DNA of 64,000 nt from contig JANHCV010000008.1 of the NCBI GenBank assembly GCA_025594325.1, positions 1,302,001-1,366,000 on the forward strand, written 5' to 3'. The notes under the pieces are model-generated. The model had not been told where the DNA came from, made no database searches, and worked only from the letters and a program-made list of their open reading frames with translations. The stretch comes from Blastocladiella emersonii ATCC 22665. Taxonomy: Eukaryota; Fungi; Blastocladiomycota. How positions within the stretch are numbered: the stretch's first letter is position 1; every line of letters begins with the position of its first letter. The position numbers and the translations under genes are program-made. Positions 28,917 to 31,635 of this stretch are shown here, in pieces.

Positions 28917-31635
28917 TCAGTTTCGGACGCCAAACCCGAAGCTAAAACCGTGCGCAAACGCTGGCCGAATTCTCGGATGGGCCTTCCGGGCGGCATCAGA
29001 GAGGAAATCGTTGCTGATGTTGAAAGGAATCGCCGGCAGCTTCTTCTCGAGGCACAAGAGTCCATAGTCGCCAATCGGGCTTCCGGTAAGATCCAATTCC
29101 TTGATGGACGGAAACGTGCGGTGACGCGTGAACCAAAGCACGCCAACGTCGGCGATTGCGTTAAACGCGAGATACAGTTTCTCGATGTCGAGCGGGAGGC
29201 GAGCGGCCAAGAGAGTCATGTCGGAATCGATCAACTGGGTGCGCTCCAGGTTCAACTCCTTCAAGCTGGTCAACCGGGCGTTGTTGAAAAGAGCAAACAA
29301 GCCTTGAGAGCCAATAGAGCTGTAGCGCAAGTTAAGCACTTGCAGATCCGGAGGCAAGTTTTTAGCAAGCGTAGCCATGCCCAAAATGCCCCAACTATCC
29401 TCGTTGCCGCTAAGGTCGAGATGCGTCAGCGTGGCCGGAAGGCTTGGAGCAATCAAGGAGACCTCGGCGGCGTCGATATCGAGATTCATCGCAGCAAACT
29501 GTTCCAAACGAGTCGCGGACATGAAGCTGGCAACTGCTTGCCACAAAGAGGGAGCCCGAATCCCGGGAATTGGCTCGGTTTGGGTGTCCCAACACACGAT
29601 GGAAAACCGTTCGATTTGCTTGCCTTCAAACGCATCCAGGACTGTGACGATGGCCTGCGGGCAAACGGGATTCGAAATAGTTGGGTAGAACGTAAAGATA
29701 GCTAGGTCGCGTTCAGGATCAAACAGGCTTGCGAAGTGGATCGGCTTTGCGATGTTCTCAAGAGGTACAGCGCTGTGAGCTCTGCGAGACCTGGAATCGA
29801 ATGCAAGAATAAGCCCGTCAATCGGACGATCGCCAAGCTGTCGCCGAAGTGCGTCGCTGGCGGCCTGGTTCTTGACACCGCGCTGCAGGAAGAAGAGCGT
29901 GTTCGCGGCCATGACTTTCACGTACACCCGCTCGTGCTCGGGCACGAGGAACTAATTGGACACGTAGACCTTGGTGAGTACTATAATGAGTTTCTAGATG
30001 ACTATAGAGTACCGTTTCCGGGCGAGCTTGGGCGGGTGCGGGTCGGCTGTCGAGACGATCAGAAGAAGACACAGAATCAGTTGTCGAATCAACGTCGGAA
30101 TCGAGCTCAAAAAATGCAGGATCAGCTGACGAGTCGAGCAAAAGCATCAAGTCGAGCTGCTCGACGATAGATTCGAACGAGGGCCGAAGTGCAAAGTCCT
30201 GAGCCCAGCACTCCTTGACCAGAGCCTAAAGTTGAGGCGTGAAGCTGGACGAGTCCGTGGGTGGGTTGGGCCGATCGCCGTCGCGGATCCAGCCCTCAAT
30301 CAGGCGAAGTTCGTGCTCTTCATGGAAAGGAAGCTGACCTGCGACCACCTCAAACGCGAGCATCGCGAAGCTGAACACGTCGGGCTCCAGCTTGTTTGCG
30401 GCCTTGCGCTTGTACCGCTCGGGTGCCATCCAGCGCACGTTGCCGGCCGTGTCCGTCGAGTACGTCGTCGTACTGCTAGCCGCAGACAGAACGCGCGACA
30501 GGCCAAAGTCGGCAACCTGCGCGCGGCCCGACCCGTCAACGAGCACGTTGTTGGCCTTGAGGCCGCCGTGCAGCACGTTCTTGGAGTGCAGGTACGCCAT
30601 GCCCATGGCCGTCTCGGTGAGCAGGCGCAGGTGCTCAGCAGGACGGCCAGCGGCGTACGTGGACAGCTCGCCGCGATCCATGTACGGCATGACGAGGAAC
30701 GGCATGTTGGCCGAGAGACACACGCCGAGGAGCGGCATAACGTGCCGGTGGCGCATCTTGCTCCAAACGAGAGCCTCCTTGGCGACGAGGTCGATGGCGG
30801 GCTGGTCGGCAGCCGTGCGACCAAACGGCGGGAGAAGGCGCTTGATGGCGACCTGCGTCCCAAACGGAATCCATGTGGCCTGCACGACTTGGGCGAACCC
30901 GCCGCGGCCAATTGGTTCGCCCTTGGCCTCGTCAAAGTCATACGAGGTCACGGCAAGAGACTCGAGAGCCGACTCGGCATCTGAGCGTTTGGCCGAGACG
31001 CCCGAGTTGCGCGAGATGGCCGATCGCATGTGCGTGTACAGCTGCTGCAGGAGGCCGAACCTCTCGTCGTCCTGCGCCTCGGAATCATCGATGCGCTGGT
31101 CCAGCGCGGCGAGGGCCTCACGCACGTCCTGGCGGTCAAGAGCGAGGTCGCGGTACAGGTCCGTGTGGTGCACGGCGAGCAGGTCCTTGGACGAGTCGAG
31201 GAGGCCTGCGCGGTCGCGCTCGGCCGCGGCCTTGAACTCGGCCGTCAGGTCGGACGTGCTCGCGTCGAACGTGAGCTCGGGGCCCAGATCGCCAAAGGAC
31301 ATGGCAAAAGTCTCGCCGGCGCGCTCGAGCGCGTCCGTGTAGTCTGCGCAAGCGAGCGCGCGTTTCAGCAGCGTCGCCTCGGCGAGATTTGCCGCGGCAT
31401 TGTTGCTTTCGAGCAGCACTCCGTGCAGGAGGCCGACGAAAGCAAGGAGCGGCCCAGGTAGCTCCTCATCGGCGCCGCGAGCCGCGAGGAATGCGGCATG
31501 AGCGGCCGAGCAGCGCTCGAGCAGCGCCGTAAGTAGGTGCATCGACTGCTGGGCCGTCTTGACGAGATGAGCCAGCAGGTCGACCTGGTCCGCAATGTCG
31601 CTGAGGTTGACGTCGTCCGCGGATGATAGTTTCAT
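28917..31635 (-). CDS. MLKL-like helical domain + TKL-type pseudokinase + RNI-like LRR fusion (~885 aa), one premature TAG
   Basis: ATG 31635; helical N-terminus; GRGGFAQV/VAIK/HGGLKANN/DFG/APE. TAG at 30228-30226 is followed in frame by ALVKECWAQDFALRPSFESIVEQL (subdomain XI). 61-nt GT..AG intron 30012-29952 joins in phase to the LRR ORF (LTHLDLSGN, LQVLNLRYS, LKELNLERT, IKELDLTGS). Confidence 0.75.

Follow-up and report, generated by a model that had tools for sequence, protein, structure and literature searches.

A Blastocladiales family of kinase and leucine-rich repeat proteins with a probably MLKL-like N-terminal bundle, and its most likely inactivated copy in Blastocladiella emersonii

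Helical bundles of the MLKL type are executioners of cell death in animals as well as in plants and the Dikarya, and how and when such bundles became coupled to kinases is an evolutionary question. In animal MLKL, the bundle is followed by two brace helices and a pseudokinase. The plant MLKLs (for example, AtMLKL1-3 and wheat Pm13) have a bundle, a five-helix brace, a kinase fold without catalytic residues and a C-terminal extension that is disordered and Ser-rich, and the plant and animal bundles superpose at 3.7-4.0 Å (10.1101/681015). Fusions of a HELL domain to a kinase, 'reminiscent of MLKL', have been described in the Dikarya, and no leucine-rich repeats (LRRs) have been found in fungal receptors of the NOD-like receptor (NLR) type (PMC12881547, a 2025 review). 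In a survey of early-diverging fungi, MLKL-family homologs were found only in Glomeromycotina (PMC8778642). The NLRs of plants (CC/RPW8-NB-LRR) and animals (NLRC-type, with LRRs like those of ribonuclease inhibitor) join an N-terminal helical output domain to C-terminal LRRs in one chain, through a central NACHT or NB-ARC NTPase. In LRRK/ROCO proteins and in plant LRR receptor-like kinases (RLKs), the LRRs precede the kinase.

Here, we analysed the gene at 28917-31635 of a 64-kb stretch of DNA from B. emersonii ATCC 22665 (assembly GCA_025594325.1, contig JANHCV010000008.1). This whole stretch is hereafter referred to as the window, and coordinates are those of the window, on the minus strand, unless stated otherwise. 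B. emersonii, a zoosporic fungus with a saprotrophic way of life, belongs to the Blastocladiomycota. A sequence-only reading of this DNA had proposed a hidden gene in three pieces that fuses an MLKL-like domain, a pseudokinase and LRRs; its coordinates and its description of the three pieces all hold. The gene is one member of a Blastocladiales-specific family of predicted cytosolic proteins. This family is undescribed in the literature that we searched, where no text joined MLKL with Allomyces and none of the 15 papers ranked highest for MLKL with blastoclads or chytrids made mention of MLKL.

The order predicted for the family is an MLKL_N-like bundle, about five brace-like helices, an active, non-RD (non-arginine-aspartate) kinase of the tyrosine kinase-like (TKL) group, a low-complexity linker that bears an intron, and LRRs. 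Animal MLKL has the same order of bundle, brace and TKL-group kinase fold, and the modelled bundle with its following helix superposes on it with a template modelling (TM) score of 0.60. The family differs from animal MLKL by its longer predicted brace, by its catalytic motifs and by the LRRs that follow the kinase; it has no known RIPK3 or RHIM partner, and the sequence similarity is below threshold. It resembles the plant MLKLs in its predicted bundle and predicted five-helix brace, in the kinase fold and in the presence of a C-terminal extension, and its modelled bundle has a structural distance to human MLKL similar to theirs (10.1101/681015), but the kinase of the plant proteins lacks catalytic residues and their extension does not consist of LRRs. 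As in the fungal HeLo/HELL proteins, among them the HELL-kinase fusions of the Dikarya, a predicted helical bundle is fused to a kinase or pseudokinase; unlike these, the family has no HeLo, HELL or SesA match in Pfam, carries LRRs and belongs to another phylum, the Blastocladiomycota. Compared with NLRs, a protein kinase takes the place of the central NTPase. The family is also akin to RIPK/TKL kinases and LRR-kinases, the solved sequences closest to its kinase including RIPK4, RIPK2, plant RLKs and TNNI3K, but its LRRs follow the kinase and it lacks a Roc-COR, transmembrane segment, death, CARD or RHIM module. By the pseudokinase criterion the family is outside MLKL proper, and by the NTPase criterion it is outside the NLRs. 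In an early-diverging fungal phylum, it would give a testable intermediate that bears on the coupling of bundles to kinases, with kinase, executioner and a built-in sensor in one chain, and it would be an exception to the reported lack of LRRs in fungal NLR-type receptors (PMC12881547).

Gene layout and relatives in the Blastocladiales

The ATG at 31635 opens a frame of 469 codons, which encodes a 235-residue all-helical region followed by a kinase. Residues 1-156 (31168-31635) form, in an AlphaFold2 (AF2) model, a predicted four-helix bundle with a fifth long helix, which is probably MLKL_N-like. Between the bundle and the kinase, residues 157-235 (30931-31167) are modelled as four further helices, brace-like and conserved family-wide. 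The TKL-type kinase domain, with subdomains I-X, consists of residues 236-469 (30229-30930). It matches the Pfam profile PK_Tyr_Ser-Thr with an E-value of 2e-39 (residues 239-461 on profile positions 4-228 of 258) and also the Pkinase profile (5.9e-33). The frame is then interrupted, within kinase subdomain XI, by an in-frame TAG (30226-30228). In the family alignment and motif comparison, which covered the window copy and 14 relatives, this position is an invariant sense codon in all 14. The kinase frame runs on past the TAG, as had been proposed: the next 71 codons (30225-30013) comprise the remainder of subdomain XI and an acidic, Ser-rich linker, match the terminal kinase profile positions 236-258, and align codon for codon with subdomain XI of the 14 relatives. 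A putative phase-0 intron of 61 nucleotides (nt) follows at 29952-30012 (GTACTC...ACTCAC...TTAG, 38% GC). The last exon has a frame of 344 codons (29951-28920), closed by a TGA at 28919-28917. Its first 170 residues (29442-29951) make a middle domain, which has no Pfam match and which is common to the paralogous locus L001 only. The remainder (28920-29441) consists of about six LRRs of the ribonuclease-inhibitor type and a C-terminal tail, and the exon matches LRR_6 (E 1.3e-12) and LRR_4 (1e-9) in Pfam.

No NACHT or NB-ARC domain was found by Pfam (E up to 1) in any piece of the gene, and neither were Roc or COR domains; its LRRs are C-terminal to the kinase. The proposal of one gene with three modules and no NLR NTPase agrees with these results and with the layout of the relatives. 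The deposited protein P0151 (469 amino acids (aa), hypothetical protein; 1,332,226-1,333,635 of the contig) is identical to the first piece and shares its start ATG, and the public model ends at the TAG. The public annotation omits the LRR exon, the piece with the rest of subdomain XI and most of the open reading frames (ORFs) nearby. The window copy matters chiefly as an annotation correction, P0151 being the front of a gene of ~885 codons that is most likely broken. Within the window, no extra copies of the bundle-kinase-LRR family were found, and scans for Rfam families and tRNAs were empty.

Removal of 30012-29952 joins the linker to the 344-codon frame in phase 0. An open frame by itself is a weak argument for this intron, since there are 61 different GT..AG pairs that would leave a frame open. 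The residues homologous to L001 are all retained only if donor 30012 is paired with acceptor 29952, 29937 or 29931, so that homology on both sides singles out these sites. At the equivalent place in the linker, L001 has an in-phase GT..AG intron of 72 nt (7621-7692 of that locus) and a second B. emersonii locus, L002, has one of 70 nt (7615-7684); in Allomyces javanicus P0004, three introns are annotated within this linker. The motif ACTCAC in the introns of the window copy and L002, and CTCAC in that of L001, lie 20-30 nt before the 3' AG. The frame of the LRR exon is shut directly upstream by the terminal TAG of the putative intron, and its first ATG (29912-29910, residue 14) is inside the region homologous to L001; the exon thus has no plausible independent start. 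The earlier proposal that an in-phase intron joins the ribonuclease-inhibitor-like LRR domain to the kinase fits these observations, and the alignments support the kinase and LRR halves as one gene with a putative intron.

In an exhaustive HMMER search, seven proteins matched both the helical region and the kinase, and all seven are from Blastocladiales: B. emersonii P0001 and P0002, A. javanicus P0004 (883 aa), B. britannica P0005 and P0012, A. macrogynus P0006 and A. arbusculus P0033. The B. emersonii paralog P0152 was added by a separate word-indexed search; such searches with the N-terminus were limited to 8000 candidates and each gave at least three proteins. B. britannica P0014 and P0015 were matched from the kinase onward only, and their N-termini still align with the family. 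The annotation gives P0004, P0012, P0014 and P0015 each as one protein that contains a helical domain, a kinase and LRRs, and full three-part relatives are found in A. javanicus, A. macrogynus and B. britannica. The source of one Allomyces relative gives its name as 'TKL protein kinase'. In B. emersonii, the DNA of L001 reads through the equivalent of the window TAG and continues with an intron, a homologous middle domain and LRR_6 repeats, all collinear, and LRRs also follow the intron of L002; LRR_6 is matched at 1.8e-11 in L001 and 1.3e-12 in L002. The same three-domain architecture was thus recovered in relatives, as the sequence-only reading had anticipated, both in the four annotated proteins and in the true readings of L001 and L002. 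As judged from these alignments, the three-part architecture is both real and old, spanning Blastocladiella and Allomyces.

The deposited models of the B. emersonii paralogs differ from these readings. P0001 (468 aa; L001:6001-8697) stops just before subdomain XI, though the DNA reads on. P0002 has an in-frame TAG at codon 16 past the ancestral ATG (L002:5906-5952), and its deposited model starts downstream and splices away kinase subdomain XI (L002:7315-7759), while the reading with the intron at 7615-7684 retains subdomain XI and a conserved motif that precedes the LRRs. P0152 (L004:8001-10276), on the same contig ~8 kb past the window end, is a duplicate of the L001 gene, with 88% identity. 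The homology ends inside the linker intron, and the annotation fuses the bundle-kinase fragment to a RanBP1-domain gene. The tree of the B. emersonii clade is (L002, (window, (L001, L004))), with supports of 97-100. L001 is probably the sole intact member of this clade, and the family is evolving by duplication and loss (birth and death) in B. emersonii.

The N-terminal bundle and the kinase

When taken alone, the N-terminus of the window copy had no match to MLKL_N or any other family in Pfam and gave nothing useful against PDB sequences, and a profile of family alignment A1 did not improve the latter result. AF2 models were made from 14-sequence family alignments, A1 for a 235-aa model and A2 for a model of residues 1-156. 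The 235-aa model is all-helical, with a predicted local distance difference test (pLDDT) score of 81.0, and includes helices 157-164, 168-186, 191-211 and 219-227. The model of residues 1-156 (pLDDT 81.4, predicted TM score 0.76) is composed of helices 11-27, 33-53, 61-85 and 89-115, with a fifth helix at 127-155. There are thus five predicted helices in the brace region, within residues 127-227, with a pLDDT of ~80.

In a Foldseek comparison of residues 1-156 with the PDB, the best match was the executioner domain of human MLKL (6d74), with TM scores of 0.60/0.60 and an E-value of ~1. The two superpose with a root mean square deviation (RMSD) of 4.8 Å over 155 columns (probability 0.87), and all other listed targets had TM scores of 0.45 or less. 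The Pfam family MLKL_N (PF22215) has colinear, sub-threshold matches in five of 14 family members, at 14-20 bits compared with a cutoff of 27. The best of these is P0001, the closest paralog (E 5.2e-4, 20 bits), in which residues 16-132 align to profile positions 9-123 of 142. When the A2 family profile was run against 177,635 PDB sequences, five matches were obtained at E up to 10, and four of them are constructs of the N-terminal domain of human MLKL, colinear, at E 1.2-1.6. These three lines are weak but agree with one another and make it probable that the N-terminus is MLKL_N-like, and we consider true homology of the modelled domain to MLKL_N to be fairly probable. Several results weigh against it: the 235-aa model had no meaningful Foldseek match in the PDB, all TM scores being below 0.3; each of the three lines is below significance; and the window copy itself is not among the Pfam matches. 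The earlier assignment of the N-terminal ~150 aa to an MLKL-type bundle is therefore plausible, with the fold, the five Pfam matches and the profile in its favour and no line above threshold.

The helices could instead be a generic oligomerisation or regulatory module, not a death executioner, in a family of ordinary signalling LRR-kinases. This explanation, which we hold possible though less than likely, draws on the sub-threshold level of all MLKL similarity, on the ease with which helical bundles converge, on the catalytically competent appearance of the family kinases, unlike MLKL, and on the Pfam result that HeLo, HELL and SesA (PF14479, PF17111 and PF17107) are not among the families that the 14 N-terminal domains matched (E up to 1). 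It does not readily account for the fact that three independent methods each rank the MLKL N-terminal domain first, and colinearly. Moreover, the TM score of 0.60 spans the whole 156-aa domain and no other PDB fold exceeds 0.45, the order of bundle, brace and TKL kinase is that of MLKL, and the RMSD of 4.8 Å is near the distance between the plant and animal MLKL bundles (10.1101/681015).

The solved kinase sequences nearest to that of the window copy are an EGFR entry, followed by RIPK4 (4.5e-23), RIPK2, plant RLKs, TNNI3K, MLK and RAF, and the presence of RIPK4 and those listed after it places the domain in the TKL group. The catalytic Asp and the Asn are kept in all 14 relatives, as HGDLKxxN in 13 and as HGDLRGVN in P0054. 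The Gly-loop, VAIK, the αC Glu, DFG and APE are likewise kept in all relatives except P0154, whose Gly-loop, VAIK and DFG columns are irregular. With the catalytic motifs kept, this is not a pseudokinase family; its kinases are predicted to be active and of the non-RD (HGD) type. This motif resembles that of many innate-immune kinases. In the window copy, VAIK, the αC Glu, DFG and APE are retained. Its Gly-loop reads GRGGFA (30909-30892), Ala replacing the last Gly-loop glycine, and HGG (30570-30562) replaces HGD, with a Gly codon (30564-30562) at the catalytic Asp of the relatives. The sequence-only reading had taken the pseudokinase for a part of the design; only the window copy reads HGG, and the idea does not extend to the family.

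The layout of the intact members suggests an autoinhibited device in a single chain. The LRRs may serve in ligand sensing or autoinhibition, the kinase may act as a switch through auto- or trans-phosphorylation, and the bundle and brace may provide the output by oligomerisation or membrane targeting, possibly leading to cell death. Such a protein would unite in cis the roles that animal RIPK3 and MLKL play in trans. In its full form, this proposal would make the blastoclad proteins single-chain intracellular receptors without an NTPase, in which the LRRs are the sensor, the switch is an active non-RD TKL kinase, and a truly MLKL-homologous bundle executes membrane damage or death. We regard this full form as doubtful. 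If true, the family would be a class of LRR-based fungal immune or allorecognition receptors and a deep-branching relative of the necroptosis executioner.

State of the window copy

The window copy alone departs from the family by the change of the catalytic Asp to Gly, by the change of the Gly-loop glycine to Ala and by a stop at an invariant sense codon. The premature TAG, the lost catalytic Asp and the lost glycine make it most likely that this copy is a recently inactivated pseudogene or null allele in a birth-and-death family. At most, it yields a 469-aa product composed of the bundle and a truncated dead kinase, with the LRR exon untranslated. The assembly was built from PacBio high-fidelity (HiFi) reads and polished with Pilon (PMC9730499). 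The HiFi depth is ~185x (6.37 Gb of reads for a 34.27-Mb assembly), and a substitution error at the TAG is therefore unlikely. In a relative-rate test, which asked whether constraint on the window copy is relaxed, no clear acceleration was seen; the branch of this copy is 0.32, compared with 0.27 for its sister. Given this normal branch length and the 884 open codons, the copy, if a pseudogene, is young. Two sister paralogs are damaged too, L002 by its TAG at codon 16 and L004 as a truncated duplicate, and the window copy is evidence for birth-and-death turnover in the family. The sequence-only reading of a hidden functional gene is thus not upheld, since the TAG stands at an invariant sense codon, is a normal stop and lies in a polished HiFi assembly.

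Two other accounts of the TAG were considered and rejected. Reassignment of TAG is ruled out, since TAG terminates the conserved VID27 and chitin synthase genes in the B. emersonii genome. Removal of the TAG by an intron would have to use the only nearby GT..AG pair, which has a span of 25 nt, not divisible by 3, and whose removal would delete conserved residues.

A full-length protein of ~885 aa could still be made if the TAG were an artefact, a variant of the strain or allele, or read through, and it would then be an LRR receptor with a dead kinase in the style of MLKL, as the sequence-only reading had it. The frame of ~885 codons has a single stop and no frameshift, the 415 codons downstream are still open and recognisably homologous, the branch length is normal, and the loss of the catalytic Asp would parallel the MLKL pseudokinases. 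We nevertheless judge this to be improbable, given the depth and polishing of the assembly, in which substitution errors are rare, the use of TAG as a terminator in VID27 and chitin synthase, and the premature TAG of the sister L002, which points to ordinary decay. To our knowledge, the bases that follow the TAG (GCTCTG) match no readthrough context, which weighs against readthrough.

Alternatively, the annotated 469-aa protein could be a functional, two-domain MLKL-like protein of bundle and kinase, the LRR exon being a relic or a separate gene. The public model does stop at the TAG, and L004/P0152, the duplicate truncated in the linker intron, is a natural relative with two domains. Such a product would be missing the catalytic Asp and also kinase subdomain XI, a part that all relatives conserve. 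In the LRR exon, the homologous region does not begin with a start codon, and the frame is closed immediately upstream. This alternative is accordingly very unlikely.

The best explanation overall, which we favour with moderate confidence, is an inactivated copy of the Blastocladiales bundle-kinase-LRR family, the mechanism of the family being inferred. What speaks against this explanation is that the other 884 codons contain no second stop or frameshift, which leaves room for a TAG that is an error, heterozygous or specific to the strain; that the splicing and expression of the window gene are putative; and that the mechanism proposed for the family members is a prediction.

The kinase half had been described as more GC-rich than the LRR half, and this is correct: the GC content is 0.65-0.66 in the N-terminus and kinase and 0.55-0.56 downstream. 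The GC content at third codon positions (GC3) falls from 0.81 to 0.55-0.70, the 71-codon piece after the TAG having 0.55. A general 5'-to-3' gradient of GC3 in the genes of the window was ruled out as the source, since the other genes are flat. The recent fusion of a kinase gene rich in GC with an LRR gene poorer in GC, the chimera proposed by the sequence-only reading, would account for a step that other genes of the window lack, and for the far greater divergence of the C-terminal half from L001: nonsynonymous (dN) and synonymous (dS) divergence are 0.23 and 0.5-0.7 in the N-terminal half, and 0.97 and ~2.5 in the C-terminal half. However, the step is found in L001 too (65% identity to the window copy), where it is sharper, from 0.90 to 0.55-0.59, and in milder form in L002 and Allomyces P0004, so that it is no mark of a recent chimera. 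It also lies near codon 450-480, at the kinase end and not at the intron or a domain junction, and the fused architecture is common to Blastocladiella and Allomyces. We consider a recent chimera highly improbable, and the GC contrast appears to be an old feature that these paralogs share. The faster-diverged C-terminal half fits either fast evolution of a sensor module or an old module exchange, and an older exchange of LRR modules among paralogs may have taken place. Since differences in codon bias confound dS, the two are inseparable here, and with the C-terminal dS saturated, dN/dS against the paralogs is of limited use.

Genomic surroundings of the gene

Paralogous ORFs of 260-560 aa form a dense array that flanks the gene on both sides, with at least 13 copies within the window and five more just beyond it (L004:10300-18272). 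The array copies in the window are, with their strands, 3703-4716(-), 7213-7995(+), 12222-13346(+), 14644-16272(+), 16590-18188(+), 19450-21135(+), 21876-23288(-), 23588-25072(-), 27316-28182(-), 32091-33500(+), 36689-38137(-), 58842-60377(-) and 61511-63013(-). The array spans the interval between the window gene and P0152, both of the bundle-kinase family. The array ORFs have no Pfam match and no relative in a database of 5.8 billion proteins. Their pairwise dN/dS of 0.2-0.5 suggests that they are real coding genes, and about eight of them, those within the 21 kb that were inspected on either side of and across the gene, are uncalled in the public annotation. Their GC3 is mostly 0.6-0.7 (up to 0.8 in 58842-60377), compared with 0.9 in core genes. 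Both directly flanking orphan ORFs, 27316-28182(-) and 32091-33500(+), contain runs of Arg-Ser dipeptides (RSRSRS...).

A second, smaller family of orphan ORFs, with 36-60% aa identity, consists of 25234-27060(+), 34721-35749(+) and 39477-40559(+) in the window, and of a match with 53% identity (L001:11776-12252) next to the VID27 gene, close to the paralog L001. An unannotated ORF of 399 aa at 5090-6289(-) has a weak LRR-like similarity to the LRR exon of the window gene (30% over 128 aa); it also resembles LRR genes beside L002 and has no Pfam match above threshold. Finally, the window contains an island of conventional genes at 45068-47470(-), 48899-50902(+) and 50978-52414(-), which encode an ABC transporter, a protein kinase and a SPRY-domain protein. 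The GC3 of this island is ~0.9, compared with ~0.6-0.7 in the surrounding orphan arrays.

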